From: Anaeramoeba ignava BMAN
Taxonomy: Eukaryota > Protista > Anaeramoebae
Direction: 5' to 3'
Assembly (NCBI GenBank): GCA_028826165.1
Contig: JAPDFW010000103.1
Location: 310,001 to 374,000 of the forward strand
Length of the DNA: 64,000 nt
The notes under the pieces were generated by a model, which worked only from the letters and a program-made list of their open reading frames with translations, had not been told where the DNA came from and made no database searches. Positions 40,718 to 47,162 of this stretch are shown here, piece after piece. Position numbers and translations under genes: made by a program. Position 1 is the stretch's first letter. Each line of letters starts with the position of its first letter.

Positions 40718-43700
40718 TTAATATCGAGAATTTTTCTTTGAAGGGAAATTGAAAACAAGATCTTTTTTGATAATTTGCATTAAATTTTTTGGATCATTAA
40801 TTTTTGCTTTCAAAGCTCCAATAATTTTGTTATTATTGTTATTATTATGGAGATATTTTCTCTTATTTTCTTTGTTATTTTGAATTTGATTTTGAATTTG
40901 AATTTGATTTTGATTTTGATTTTGATTTTGATTTTGATTTTGATTTTGAATTTGATTTTGATTTTGATTTTGATTTTGATTTTGAATTTGATTTTGATTT
41001 TCAATTTGACTTTTGGAGATTTTTTTTTTGGGAATTTGGATTTGATTATTATTGATATGGGAAAAATTTTTTGAGATGACATTTGGAGAATGAAGAACAT
41101 TGCGGAATGGAGAAAGATTTTTTATTAATGGACTAGAATGAGGACTATTAGTTGTATAGGAAAGAATTAAATTTCGAAGTTGATTGAGTTGATTAGTTTG
41201 TAATTCAATCAAATCAACAAGTGATTGCTCATTTTGTCTAAGTCGAGTGTTTTCGATTTCAAGATCTTTTAAACGAAAATTAGAAAGCAAAAAGTCTATT
41301 TGAGATTTATCGAGAGAATCATGATTATTAATAAGTTTGATTAAGTTCTGGCAATTTAATTGAGCATTTTCCACTTTTTTTTGCAATTGTATTTTTTGAT
41401 CATGAAATTGGGAGATTTTTGAATGAAGATTTTTCAATTCTGAATTAATGGATTCATTTTCATAAGAAGTTTTTTGGAAGGAAAGTAGGAGGTGTTGAGT
41501 TTTCAAAGATTGAATGGCTATTTTTGTTTGCAAGTATTGATTTTCAAGTTGAGTAAATTCGTCAGTAAGAGAAGCAAGATGATCAAATAAGAATTGACCA
41601 TTTTTATGGAGATTTTCAGAGAGATTGTTGATATTATTTTGATTTATATTCATGTTTTGATTTATATTCATATTTTGATTTATATTTATATTTTGATTTA
41701 TATTCATATTTTGATTTATATTCTTATTTTGATTTATATTCTTATTTTGATTTATATTCTTATTTTGATTTATATTCTTATTTTGATTTATATTCATATT
41801 TTGATTTATATTCATATTTTCGTTGTGCTTGGATTGCTTAATCTCTTTAAATCTTTTGATAGCTGACTTAAGAGTAAATTTGCAAGCATTGATATCATTA
41901 GAGAGAGAGATGGTTTCCATTATTGTAGGATTGGATTCATCATTCATGAGCGGATTTCCATCTTGGTCTGAGTTCTGGACAAATTTGGAAAGTTTTTGCA
42001 GAAAGGTTTCAGGATGAGAAGGATTTTGATTCGAAGATGTGTTTGGTTGATCAAGTTTGAGAGTGTGAGAAAATTTTTCGAGTTTGCGCTTGAGGGTGCC
42101 TACTTCACGACGGAGATCCGCGATGATACGGGTGTATTCTGAGATATGGGCATGGATTTTACGGCGATTGGTAGAAGGCTTTGTTTGTATTTTGCTTGCA
42201 CGAGAGGCAAAAACAAGAGTATTGAAAGTATCCTCATAATTTTTGTCTGATGGAGAAATATTGGCTATCATAAGAGTGAGACAGTTGCCTCCAAGAGAAT
42301 CTTTGAGAAGACGAGTGAGCTTGCTATCTCTATATGGGACATGAGCTTTCTTGGACTTTTTCGCAAGAGAGTTGATGCAGTTGCCTAGTGCAAGAAGAGA
42401 CTTGTTGATGTTTGCTCCTTCAACAAGTCTCATTCCAGAATTCTGTGTTGAGCGCTCTGAGCCAGCGAGATCAATCAAGGAAAGCTTTGCGGAGACTGTT
42501 TGCGATTGGAGACCGGGTGTGCGTTCTTTCTTGAGGAGAATGACTTGGAGAACAGCATGTGATCTTGATGAGACTTGATTTGCCAAAGTGGGAGATTGTT
42601 TCCTCTTTGCGTTTCCTTGTTTCAGCAAATCGAAAACCTGAGACGCATTGGCAATCGGGATCTTTGTGATGTTTGTGACCTCGGTACCGTTGTCGGATTC
42701 CCTGATATGAAGTGATTTTTCTGAGGAAGTTCCAAGAAGATCGCGGATCGTTTCGTTGTAAATCTCCAAATACGAAATGGAAAGTGAAAACGAAAAATCC
42801 GCAGATTGCTTATCAATCAACGAGAAGATGTCGCTAATCGCCATGTACATAATCCCTGGCTGCTCGTTCTCGCGGTTTCCAAGCATTGTGTATGTGTTGT
42901 GAGTGGGCACGAAATGGCGAGTCAAGAACAAATGGCGTGAGTCGGTAATTTCGATGCACTGGCATTTGTGTCTGCCGACAGAGACGATATTGCAGAGCCG
43001 ACGAACCAATCCTTTACCTTCTGGTACGGGATGGAACAACATCTTGTGAGGGTGTTTTTTCCTTGCAATCTCGAAATAGTTAAAGGATACTTGAAATAGG
43101 GAAAAATTGTGTTTTTCGAAAATAAAACAAATGGATCCAAGTGATTCAAATAACGAACGAAGTTGCGACACCAAAGGCGCAGAAATTATGAATGGAAGTT
43201 TAAATATAAGCGAACCACCTGGCGAAATATTGAATGGGATGCAAGTAAAAAATCCTTGAATAAATTCCAATCGAGAGTTGAGCGATGTGAACAAGTATTT
43301 TGGAGGAATCGAAAGTAATTCGGCGAATTTTTGAGCTTGGGAAATGAGCTTAAGAAGCGCGGAAAAAATGATACCGAAGGCATAAGATGATATTGATGTT
43401 TTCTGTTGAAAGAAAAACGCAGGTTTTGAAATGGGGATCGCGATATTAAAATGATTATTTTTAAGACACTGAGCCAGGAAGAAGGTGTCTGTTAATATTG
43501 ACAACGGGGATTTGAGTGCAGTGTTTCTTGGAGTAAGAAGAGCAGCCCAAATATGGTCTGCAGAGCATTCTACAAATGATTTATCATGGAAGACTAAACG
43601 ATAAACAGGTATTTTTCCTTGAGGGAAAATGCCTGAAATTGAAGAAAATTTGCCATTTGGTGTGCAGACATGATCTCCAATTTTGAGACTGGAGTTTTTT

Positions 43701-44332
43701 CGTGGGCCATTTGGTGTGTAGACTACTTCTGAGTTGATAAGACTCTTGCCAGCTCCTGTTGCACCATAAGCAAAGACTGTGCAATTAAAACCGTTGAAAA
43801 TTCCTTTTTCTCCACAAATTAAATTTCGAGCAGTTTTAGAATAGAATTCTCTTTGTGTGATATCTTCATCAGCTACAAAATCAAAAGCGAATCTCGAATC
43901 TTTTGCTTTTCTCTTTTTTTTTTTTTAAATTAAAATTAAAATAAAAATTAAAATAAAAATTAAAATTAAAATTAAAATTAAAATTAAAATTAAAATTAAA
44001 ATTAAAATTAAAACTAAAATTAAAATTAAAATTAAAATTAAAATTAAAATTAAAATTAAAATTAAAATAAAAAGTGGAACAACAATTTTGGATTTTATTT
44101 TCGAAAATTTTACTTTATGACCTGGATTTGAATTTTGTACTTGATTATCTTCTTCTCCTGGATCGAAAAGAAGAATATTTTCTGAAAGTGGTTGAACAAT
44201 TTTTTGAGTATTTTTTTCATCTCCAATCATTGGACGAATTCTTAAATTTTTAAATTTTAATTTTTAATTTAATTTTCAATTTAAATTTTTTTAAAATATA
44301 ACGAACCTAATTGCAACTGAAATGGAACTCAT
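40718..44332 (-). CDS. Kinesin-8 family motor (KIF18/KIF19-like) precursor containing an intein
   Basis: Exons 44332-44307, 44240-44114, 43912-40718. Motifs VAIRIRP, FAFDFV, FAYGATGAGK|TYTM, SYLEIYNE, SSRSHAVLQ, LSLIDLAGSER, EGANINKSLLALGNCIN and HVPYRDSKLTRLLKDSLGGNC. Confidence 0.93.
42896..43744 (-). mobile_element. Intein (283 aa) in the kinesin P-loop, with a class-3-type WCT signature and an eroded endonuclease remnant
   Basis: In-frame insert between GAGK and TYTM. Starts SLINSEVVYTPNG, block B is VECSADHIW, block F is CQCIEITDSRHLFLT, block G is FVPTHN, and the +1 residue is Thr. Remnants IPPKYLFTSLNSRLEFIQGFF and LRSLFESLG. Confidence 0.95.
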
Positions 44333-44761: not shown

Positions 44762-47162
44762 ATGACAAATAAATCAAGAATTCCACCTAAATTACCAACA
44801 ACACCACCACCACCTTTGAAGAAAGACTATACACACAATAATCCACCACCTCAACCTCCTAGACCTTATCAAGATTTCAATGATTCTAATCAATCAAATT
44901 TACAAAATCAAACACAAGATGATTGTATGTTTAGAGCATTCAATTTCTTTAATTCTCCTTGATTATCATTCATTATTCTTCATTAATTTAATTTTTTTAT
45001 TTAATTGTTTATTCGTTCAATTGTGTTTCAATTCAAAATTAAATTCAAATTAAATTAAATTAAAAATGAAAATTAAATTCTAAATTAAATTCAAAATTAA
45101 ATTCAAAATTAAATTCAAAATCAAATTCAAAATTAAATTCAAAATTAAATTCAAAATTAAAATCAAATTTAAAATTAATTCTAAATTAAATTAAAAATTA
45201 AATTCAAAATTAAATTCAAAATTAAATTCAAAATTAAATTCAAAATTAAAATTAAAATTAAATTCAAAATTAATTCAAAATTAAATTAAAATTAAAAATT
45301 AAAATTAAATTCAAAATTAAATTAAAATTAAAAATTAAAATTAAATTCAAAATTAAATTAAAATTAAATCAAAATTAAATTCAAAATTAAATTCAAAATT
45401 AAATTCAAAATTAAAATCAAAATTAAATTAAAAATTAAATTAAATTAAAAATTAAAATCAAAATTAAAAATTAAATTCAAAATTAAATTCAAAATCAAAA
45501 TTAAATTCAAAATTAAATTCAAAATTAAATTCAAAATCAAATTCAAAATTAAAATTAAAATTAAATTCAAAACTAAATTCAAAACTAAATTCAAAATTAA
45601 ATTCAAAATTAAATTCAAAATTCAATTCAAAATTAAATTCAAAATTAAATTCAAAATTAAATTCAAAATCAAAAATTAAATTCAAAATTAAATTCAAAAT
45701 CAAAATTAAATTAAAAATTAAATTAAATTTAAATTCAAAATTAAAATTAAAATTAAATTCAAAACTAAATTCAAAATTAAATTCAAAATTAAATTCAAAA
45801 TTAAATTCAAAATCAATTCAAAATTCAAAATTAAATTCAAAATTAAATTCAAAATTAAAATCAAATTCAAAATTAAATTAAAAATTAAATTAAATTCAAA
45901 ATTCAATTCTAAATTAAATTCAAAATTAAATTCAAAATTAAATTCAAAATTAAATTCAAAATTCAAAATTAAATTCAAAATTAAATTCAAAATCAATTCA
46001 AAATCAAATTTAAAATTAAATTCAAAATTAAATTAAAAATTAAATTAAATTCAAAATTCAATTCTAAATTAAATTCAAAATTAAAATTAAATTAAATTCA
46101 AAATTAAATTCAAAATTAAATTCAAAATTAAATTAAAAATTAAATTCAAAATTAAATTCAAAATTAAATTCAAAATTAAATTAAAAATTAAATTAAAAAT
46201 TAAAATCAAATTAAAATTAAAATTCAAAATCAAAATTCAAATCAAAATTAAAATCAAATTCAAAATTAAAATCAAATTCAAAATTAAAAGTTATCGAATT
46301 TGATCCATTGGCAGAAAACCTAAAACAAGAAGAAAAAAGTAACAATCAAAGAAGAGGATCAACAGACAAATATTCTGGATTAACAAAAGAAGAGCGGAAA
46401 ATTGCAGACAAGCAACGGAAAGAGCAAGAGCGACGAGAAAAACAAGAACGGAAGGATATGAAAGAAAAGCTAAAGCGGGAACAAAAAGAAAAAAAACTAG
46501 CGGATAAAAAAGAACGGAAAGAAAAAAAAGAACAAGAAAAACGAGAGAAAAAGAAAAAAAAAGAGCAGAAAGACAAAGGTAAGGAAGCGCAAGATAACGA
46601 GGATACCAAAGTGTTTGGGGTGCCGTTAATGGCGGCAATTGGGCATGAAAATCGTTCAGAATTCTCACCACCGAGTATAATTGAAAAATCAATAATGTAT
46701 CTTGAAGAAAAGGCAAAATTCGAAGAGGGAATATATCGACTCACAGGCAACGTGCGGGAGATGAACGAGCTCAAAGAGGCTTTTGACAGAGGAGAGGATG
46801 TGGATTTGGCTGGAATTCGCGACGAGAATACAGTCGCTAGTCTTATCAAGCTTTACTTCCGCGAATTACCCGAACCAATTTTCGGTGACTTCACTGATTC
46901 GCTTTATGATGTATCCTCTCTCGAGAACGAAGACCGCATACTCGCCCTCCGACACATCTATAACAGTATCCCCGAAGTCAATAAGGCTGTCCTGAGATGG
47001 CTTCTTCCCCATTTGGATCGTGTGCAAAAACAGAGTTATAAGAATAAGATGACTCCTGAAAATTTGGCCATTGTTTTTGCTCCTACTTTGCATATCCCTA
47101 CTGGATTGCTTGCTTTGATGATTACTAATTGGGCTGATATACTTTGTCCAGAAAATAATTGA
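44762..47162 (+). CDS. RhoGAP-domain protein (RalBP1-like layout: Pro-rich N-terminus, K/E-rich coil, RhoGAP)
   Basis: Exons 44762-44924 and 46291-47162. Motifs VFGVPL, EEGIYRLTG (Arg finger), VASLIKLYFRELPEP and NKMTPENLAIVFAPTL. Confidence 0.9.
45030..46285. repeat. Intronic (AAATTCAAAATT)n array
   Basis: Fills the RhoGAP intron. Confidence 0.9.

Follow-up and report, generated by a model that had tools for sequence, protein, structure and literature searches.

A predicted class 3 intein of phage type in the Walker A motif of a kinesin-8 from Anaeramoeba ignava

The window analysed here, 64,000 nucleotides of contig JAPDFW010000103.1 (positions 310,001 to 374,000) from the Anaeramoeba ignava BMAN assembly GCA_028826165.1, encodes on its minus strand a kinesin motor protein whose P-loop is interrupted by an in-frame insert. 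We read this insert as a class 3, phage-derived intein fixed in the Walker A motif of a kinesin-8, carrying a dead homing endonuclease and forming part of a lineage-specific radiation (probability of about 0.85 for this reading as a whole). Direct translation gives exact coordinates for the insert, 42896-43744, with 283 codons free of stops lying between an N-extein that ends in ...FAYGATGAGK and a C-extein that reads TYTMLGNRENEQPGIMY..., so that the Walker A motif is split after its Lys (GATGAGK / 283 residues / TYTM). The break falls in the P-loop because the Pfam Kinesin profile matches the two sides of the insert as separate stretches, the second of which starts at profile position 89 of 327, directly after the insert, and continues to the end of the motor profile. 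Among solved structures, the C-extein is nearest to KIF19, Plasmodium kinesin-8, Kip3 and KIF18A (E values of 3e-68 to 1e-62 or 4e-62); kinesin-8 proteins fill the first 14 places, and KIF4 follows as the next group at 3e-54. Kinesin-8 thus seems a fair name for the host. The initial annotation had assigned these positions to an insert splitting a kinesin-8 Walker A motif and had set the start of the exon at 43912, and both assignments hold, as the open frame extends to approximately 43912 and is directly preceded by an in-phase AG acceptor that fits the start of exon 3. Besides the intein, this exon encodes the remaining motor sequence and a coiled-coil tail with Asn/Gln-rich repeats.

The insert is open in the host frame only, while its other two frames carry 6 and 10 stops. 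None of 20000 shuffles of its 849 bases stayed open in the host frame and the analytic probability of such an outcome is about 4e-7; a chance open frame was rejected on these numbers. Alternatively, the insert could be an unusual intron that is removed as RNA, its intein-like frame never being translated. Its junctions, ...GGCAAG / AGTCTT... and ...CACAAC / ACATAC..., lack GT...AG borders, and its GC (guanine plus cytosine) content is 39%, compared with 35% and 43% for the flanking exon parts and 7.6% and 4.5% for the gene's own inferred introns, which measure 66 and 178 bases. Borders, GC content, length and the improbable open frame led us to reject the intron reading on sequence grounds, and together with the conservation of catalytic residues as protein across divergent paralogues and the confidently predicted intein fold, both described below, they make it extremely improbable.

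Fold and homology leave us very confident that the insert is a real splicing intein, splicing itself being predicted. It begins with Ser-Leu-Ile-Asn-Ser-Glu-Val-Val-Tyr-Thr-Pro-Asn-Gly and ends with Phe-Val-Pro-Thr-His-Asn, and it combines in-frame insertion within a conserved host motif with a Ser-x-x-His block B, a terminal His-Asn, a nucleophile at the +1 position and a HINT fold. Block A starts with Ser1, block B reads Ser61-Ala-Asp-His64-x-Trp66, block F Cys261-x-Cys263 and block G Thr281-His282-Asn283, followed by Thr+1. Nine paralogues from the same genome, 24-37% identical to the kinesin-8 copy, were aligned (alignment A1), and His64, Trp66, Cys263, Thr281, His282 and Asn283 are invariant in all nine copies. 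Identity in the N-terminal half of the HINT domain is 41-47% to most of the other copies that start with Ser1 and 37% to the Rad51-like copy. Used as a profile against solved inteins, A1 matched gp41-1 carrying a grafted Trp/Cys/Thr (WCT) triplet (6riz, 9e-14), wild-type gp41-1 (6qaz, 6.5e-10) and the class 3 DnaB intein of M. smegmatis (Msm DnaB1; 6bs8, 2.4e-6), as well as M. chimaera DnaB1 (Mch DnaB1; 6rix, 6riy). In these alignments, His-Leu-Trp pairs with His65-x-Trp67 of Msm DnaB1 and the Trp is also aligned in Mch DnaB1, while Cys-Ile-Leu-Ile-Asp...His-Leu-Tyr-Leu...Thr-His-Asn pairs with Cys118-Val-Glu-Val-Asp...His-Leu-Tyr-Leu...Thr-His-Asn of Msm DnaB1 (His65/Trp67/Cys118 numbering as in PMC5222942). 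The AlphaFold2 model based on A1 (predicted local distance difference test score, pLDDT, 90.3; predicted template modelling score, pTM, 0.87) contains a HINT splicing fold and a LAGLIDADG endonuclease fold. Foldseek retrieved intein-endonucleases as the best matches to the whole model, namely PI-SceI (1e-10), PhoVMA, TliVMA and PI-PfuI, and for the splicing part the class 3 DnaB inteins 6bs8, 6rix and 6riy along with many mini-inteins, at a probability of 1.00 to many solved inteins. The features of the gene and the intein are listed in Table 1.

Table 1 Layout of the kinesin-8 gene and its predicted intein, in window positions
Feature	Position	Strand	Basis
Inferred exon 1 (ATG at 44332; Met-Ser-Ser-Ile-Ser-Val-Ala-Ile)	44307..44332	-	Sequence reading
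Inferred intron 1 (66 bases, 7.6% GC, GT..AG)	44241-44306	-	Sequence reading
Inferred exon 2 (contains ...ILLFDPGEE..., a motor N-terminal motif continuing exon 1)	44091..44240	-	GT..AG borders; 3' end +/-3 bases
Inferred intron 2 (178 bases, 4.5% GC, mostly TTTTAA repeats)	43913..44090	-	GT..AG, sequence reading
Exon 3 of the kinesin-8 gene	40718..43912	-	One open frame, 1064 codons, to the stop codon; Pfam Kinesin 1.9e-92
N-extein end, Walker A residues GATGAGK	43745..43765	-	Translation and Pfam Kinesin
Predicted intein, 283 residues, Ser1 to Asn283	42896..43744	-	Open frame, AlphaFold2 model, Foldseek, paralogue profile
HINT N-terminal half, about residues 1-110, blocks A and B	43415..43744	-	Paralogue invariance and alignment to Msm DnaB1
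Ser1 codon (block A)	43742-43744	-	
His64 codon (block B)	43553-43555	-	
Trp66 codon (block B)	43547-43549	-	
Degenerate LAGLIDADG homing-endonuclease domain, about residues 111-234, approximate boundaries	43043..43414	-	Helix-rich AlphaFold2 model; matches to intein-endonuclease folds
HINT C-terminal half, about residues 235-283, blocks F and G	42896..43042	-	Paralogue invariance and alignment to Msm DnaB1
Cys263 codon (block F)	42956-42958	-	
Thr281-His282-Asn283 (block G)	42896-42904	-	
Thr281 codon	42902-42904	-	
C-extein start, Thr+1 (42893-42895) then YTM, completing GAGK-T	42884..42895	-	Translation, Pfam Kinesin and solved kinesin matches

With Trp at position 12 of block B, Cys at position 4 of block F, Thr at position 5 of block G and Thr+1, the intein carries the residues that characterize class 3, while its Ser at position 1 departs from the original 2010 criterion of no nucleophile at this position. 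An exhaustive profile search of a representative library returned 19228 relatives at E <=0.001, 6720 of them at E <=1e-30, and 190 full-length inteins from the best 150 of these 19228 proteins were compared. Every one of these closest inteins has the block F Cys, the block B His and the terminal Asn (190/190 each), and Trp (B:12) and Thr (G:5) are found in 184/190 and 188/190, respectively. The +1 residue is Thr in 129, Ser in 52 and Cys in 9, and Gly-Lys directly precedes the intein in 115 of the 190. Position 1 is most often Ala (121), followed by Pro (27), Ser (11) and Cys (6). Judged by sequence, the family of the kinesin-8 intein falls squarely within class 3 as defined by Tori et al. 2010, who reported that most WCT inteins reside in ATPase P-loops and that 3 of 37 have Ser or Cys at position 1 (PMC2807308); a nucleophile at the N-terminus is described as "not required" in class 3 inteins (PMC5222942). 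The class 3 triplet proposed in the initial annotation is borne out, since Trp66, Cys263 and Thr281 align with their counterparts in solved class 3 inteins. Its emphasis on the coexistence of WCT with Ser1 stands in part: Ser1 is indeed present, but the combination is not unprecedented, being a known minority state on account of the 3/37 inteins of Tori et al. and the 17/190 closest inteins that have Ser1 or Cys1.

Phage kinship can be seen at the level of single copies as well. Searched by itself, the kinesin-8 copy finds 215 phage records, with matches that cover at least 96% of the intein and identities of about 25-28%, and several among the phage matches listed fall in genes of large phages annotated as terminase large subunit or helicase. 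A related copy in the AAA1 domain of a dynein heavy chain matches 615 phage records, of which 294 come from mycobacteriophages.

At least 11 intact copies of the intein are found in the A. ignava genome, all located at GK / S...THN / T or GK / A...THN / T of a Walker A motif. Apart from the kinesin-8 of the window and a second kinesin-8 paralogue, the hosts are dynein heavy chain AAA1 (Pfam AAA_6) and AAA3 (AAA_7), each represented by 2-3 near-identical gene copies, two DEAH-type helicases (GETGSGK / TTQ and GQTGSGK / TTQ), and one each of a DEAD/Brr2-like helicase, a Rad51-like protein and an SNF2 remodeller. Broken fragments of the same intein family are present too. A FastTree phylogeny of 199 inteins places the eight aligned Ser1 copies together with three library proteins in a clade of their own (support 0.998), and these three proteins are 99.6-100% identical to the genome's own genes. 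The sister group of this clade consists of inteins that start with Ala (Ala1) and have DnaB-like flanking motifs, as read by eye. The SNF2 copy, which starts Ala-Gln-Pro-Leu-Asp, branches elsewhere, among phage-like sequences. From these relationships, the Ser1 copies are best interpreted as one lineage-specific radiation within a very extensive family of phage and bacterial inteins, most of which have Ala1. Two proposals of the initial annotation gained support: a prokaryotic or phage-type origin from relatives that are overwhelmingly phage and bacterial P-loop inteins (profile search and phage records), and movement between non-homologous P-loops from the survey of kinesins, dynein, helicases, Rad51-like protein and SNF2 remodeller.

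The second kinesin-8 paralogue (L010:2934-3971; G000:C27, about 34.9-36.0 kb) carries its intein at the same GATGAGK / ... / TYTM site. Between the two paralogues, identity is 57% for the exteins but only 26% for the inteins, which do not group as sisters in the tree; this suggests either an old duplication followed by fast intein divergence or separate invasions. No A. flamelloides orthologue was found among the best 150 representatives, where the three clade members are 99.6-100% identical to the genome's own genes; vertical inheritance of the kinesin site is suggested by a published comparison of Anaeramoeba species (PMC10710043, see below).

Further copies and fragments were encountered in the same genome. 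Two DEAH-helicase genes about 89 kb apart, G000:C68:372972-376445 (L004) and G000:C68:461695-465141 (L005), share the same N-extein before GQTGSGK. The L004 intein is split over two reading frames, with its N part and C part in separate open reading frames, which could be due to a frameshift or an intron within the intein. Fragmentary copies with in-frame TGA, TAA and TAG codons lie near contig ends at G000:C113:181000-184995 (L014) and G000:C103:1-4000 (L015) and are probably pseudogenised inteins or assembly edges. Lastly, a weak match (E 0.2 in the genome search) at G000:C56:333500-339000 (L016) marks a different intein that ends ...Phe-Ser-Val-Thr-His-Asn / Ser, apparently a member of a separate family in the genome.

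Between splicing blocks B and F, residues 120-230 of the AlphaFold2 model form the helices and strands of a two-motif LAGLIDADG fold, and Pfam LAGLIDADG_3 is touched weakly by 3 of the 9 paralogues. In the wider family, motif 1 ends in Gly-Asp-Gly, the Asp being present in 155/190 inteins, and motif 2 reads Asp-Thr-Asp-Gly, its aspartates being present in 187/190 and 171/190, respectively. The kinesin-8 copy has Ala in place of the motif 1 aspartate and Thr and Ile in place of the two motif 2 aspartates. None of the genome's nine aligned copies retains an acidic residue at either catalytic position, and the homing endonuclease looks catalytically dead in all of them. As the active site is gone in every aligned copy, spread among P-loops would be either over or independent of the endonuclease. 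The kinesin-8 intein is the most decayed of the aligned copies given the Thr at the first motif 2 position, the loss of about 60 residues after motif 1 relative to the paralogues and the longest branch in the clade, with every splicing residue intact. Its GC content of 39% is closer to that of the host exon than is the GC content of the other copies (21-35%), and this host-like composition may reflect long residence.

Based on the invariant residues and homology, we propose that splicing follows class 3 chemistry, as described for MP-Be DnaB and related inteins (PMC2807308, PMC5222942). The kinesin-8 would be translated as a precursor whose P-loop is interrupted after the Lys. Cys263 at block F position 4, activated by His64 together with Trp66 and Thr281, would attack the peptide bond between this Lys and Ser1, after which the N-extein would be transferred to Thr+1. 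Cyclisation of Asn283 would then release the intein, and joining of Lys to Thr+1 would restore GAGKT. Until this has happened, the precursor should be unable to bind ATP properly; a precedent for such a block, the P-loop intein of P. horikoshii RadA, is cited in PMC6195587. Because the endonuclease looks catalytically dead, the kinesin-8 copy would persist no longer by mobility but because the motor needs precise splicing. A class 3 route, rather than one initiated by Ser1, is what we consider probable.

Several observations weigh against the proposed reading. Ser1 is kept in 8/8 aligned clade members, encoded by AGT/AGC in five and by TCA/TCT in three. Copies of either codon type are scattered over the tree, and a switch between the families takes two substitutions. 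Conservation across both sets of serine codons suggests that Ser1 is under selection, in keeping with a functional residue. The WCT triplet by itself is no proof of mechanism, since grafting it onto gp41-1 gave no working class 3 intein (PMC7664689). Pfam and NCBIfam searches with the kinesin-8 insert alone gave no match and this copy has the longest branch in the Ser1 clade, so that some loss of splicing efficiency is conceivable.

The first of these points is also the basis for a standard class 1 or mixed route, in which Ser1 forms the first ester and the WCT triplet is a relic or a helper. Retention of Ser1 in all eight clade copies, only 24-37% identical, with AGY codons in five and TCN codons in three, implies selection for serine itself, and gp41-1, which comes nearest in sequence among the solved inteins, belongs to class 1 and starts with Cys1. 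However, Cys263, Trp66 and Thr281 are equally invariant, block F position 4 is usually Asp in class 1 inteins (PMC2807308) and Ala1 inteins surround the Ser1 clade in the tree. Ser1 or Cys1 is moreover found in a known minority of WCT inteins, in a class that can dispense with the nucleophile (PMC5222942). On balance, we regard a class 1 or mixed route as unlikely. The missing single-sequence match and the long branch, together with the degenerate and shortened endonuclease domain, could instead indicate a decayed intein that no longer splices, leaving a dead gene or a permanently interrupted motor whose function is covered by the second kinesin-8 paralogue. Yet no splicing residue has been lost, the exon keeps an open frame of 1064 codons with a strong Kinesin match that reaches the end of the motor profile, and endonuclease decay with retention of splicing is the normal fate of fixed inteins. 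The paralogue in turn has an intein at the same site and would not provide an intein-free backup. We therefore judge a non-splicing intein to be highly improbable.

A variant of the proposed class 3 reading is that the Ser1 clade represents a natural intermediate, a class 3 scaffold with a regained nucleophile at position 1, in which either Ser1 or Cys263 could start splicing. It is prompted by the retention of Ser1 in every copy through AGY/TCN switches, for which the single-step intermediates, Thr and Cys, are nucleophiles as well. Since position 1 is Ser, the unspliced sequence formally retains a Walker A motif, G-x4-G-K-S, to which no function is attached here; conceivably, motor maturation might be controlled by nucleotide or redox state via this complete GAGK-S motif. 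We put this idea forward tentatively and consider it doubtful. Redox control of the kinesin-8 intein is plausible by analogy: in Msm DnaBi1, H2O2 (hydrogen peroxide) locks the catalytic Cys118 into a disulfide with Cys48 (PMC6195587), and N-cleavage of Mch DnaB1 is inhibited by H2O2 according to the legend of Figure 2c in PMC7664689. The kinesin-8 intein also has additional cysteines, Cys27, Cys60 and Cys261, near the splicing blocks in sequence.

Compared with known systems, the mycobacterial and mycobacteriophage DnaB class 3 inteins (MP-Be DnaB, Msm DnaBi1 6bs8 and Mch DnaB1 6rix) share with the kinesin-8 intein the insertion after GK, the WCT triplet, the HINT fold, Thr or Ser at +1 and the block F/G pattern C-[VI]-E-[VI]...HLYL...THN. 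They start with Ala or another non-nucleophile, whereas the kinesin-8 intein starts with Ser; the solved representatives are mini-inteins without an endonuclease, whereas the kinesin-8 intein keeps a dead endonuclease fold; and their hosts are replicative helicases of bacteria and phages in contrast to a eukaryotic cytoskeletal motor. The cyanophage-like gp41-1, the best solved match to the A1 profile, begins with a nucleophile as well and has Thr at position 5 of block G. Unlike the kinesin-8 intein, it is naturally split, lacks an endonuclease and belongs to class 1, with Cys1 and with Phe and Asp in the places of Trp and Cys. Inteins of the PI-SceI/VMA1 type show the same two-domain layout, with LAGLIDADG between blocks B and F of HINT, and include the best whole-model fold match. 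They differ in being class 1 inteins with Cys1 and Cys+1 and an active endonuclease, and their identity to the kinesin-8 intein is 10-12%.

The closest known system is found in the same organism group. Gallot-Lavallee et al. 2023 (PNAS, PMC10710043) reported 103 inteins for A. ignava BMAN and, for two strains of A. flamelloides, 45 and 47, with new host categories that include "two types of Dynein ... and one Kinesin". In the same paper, their "cluster 1" inteins are apparently class 3, all reside in P-loops of non-homologous proteins and have phage-like atypical N-terminal residues, and transfers between P-loops were proposed. A kinesin site is given there as one of eight insertion sites common to A. 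ignava and A. flamelloides, and a dynein with three P-loop inteins is mentioned. The intein described here shares with cluster 1 the organism group, the class 3 signature, the unrelated P-loop hosts, the proposed phage link and the kinesin host, and nothing essential differs. The intein family, with a kinesin among the intein hosts, had thus already been reported for Anaeramoeba in 2023. What the present analysis adds is modest, namely the Ser1 clade as a single radiation, the serine kept across codon families and the loss of the endonuclease aspartates. The Prp8 gene (G000:C98:191000-210500) was also inspected and contains five inteins with C-side junctions HN / CWKA, HN / CPKE, HN / SGFE, HN / CQVF and AKWK / ...HN / TAEE. 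This agrees with the five Prp8 inteins and the new AKWK/TAEE site that PMC10710043 reports for A. ignava BMAN.

Two repeat-rich regions of the window were noted in passing. In the kinesin-8 tail, long Asn/Gln-rich tandem repeats are encoded at 41590-41870 and around 40750-40950, with Asn-Ile-Asn-Gln-Asn-Lys/Met as repeat units and Asn-Gln runs near the C-terminus. The intergenic stretch at 45100-46000 has a GC content of 6-9% and a GC skew of -1 (no G on the plus strand), and its short repeats read as (Leu-Ile-Leu-Asn)n or (Phe-Glu-Phe-Asn)n in mechanically called open reading frames.

Kinesin-8 motors regulate microtubule length in other organisms. Judging from the position of the insert, a eukaryote-specific motor of this kind in A. 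ignava should fail to bind ATP properly until a phage-derived element has excised itself. More generally, inteins can move between unrelated proteins that have only the P-loop in common, a point made for Anaeramoeba in 2023 and confirmed here independently from raw sequence.

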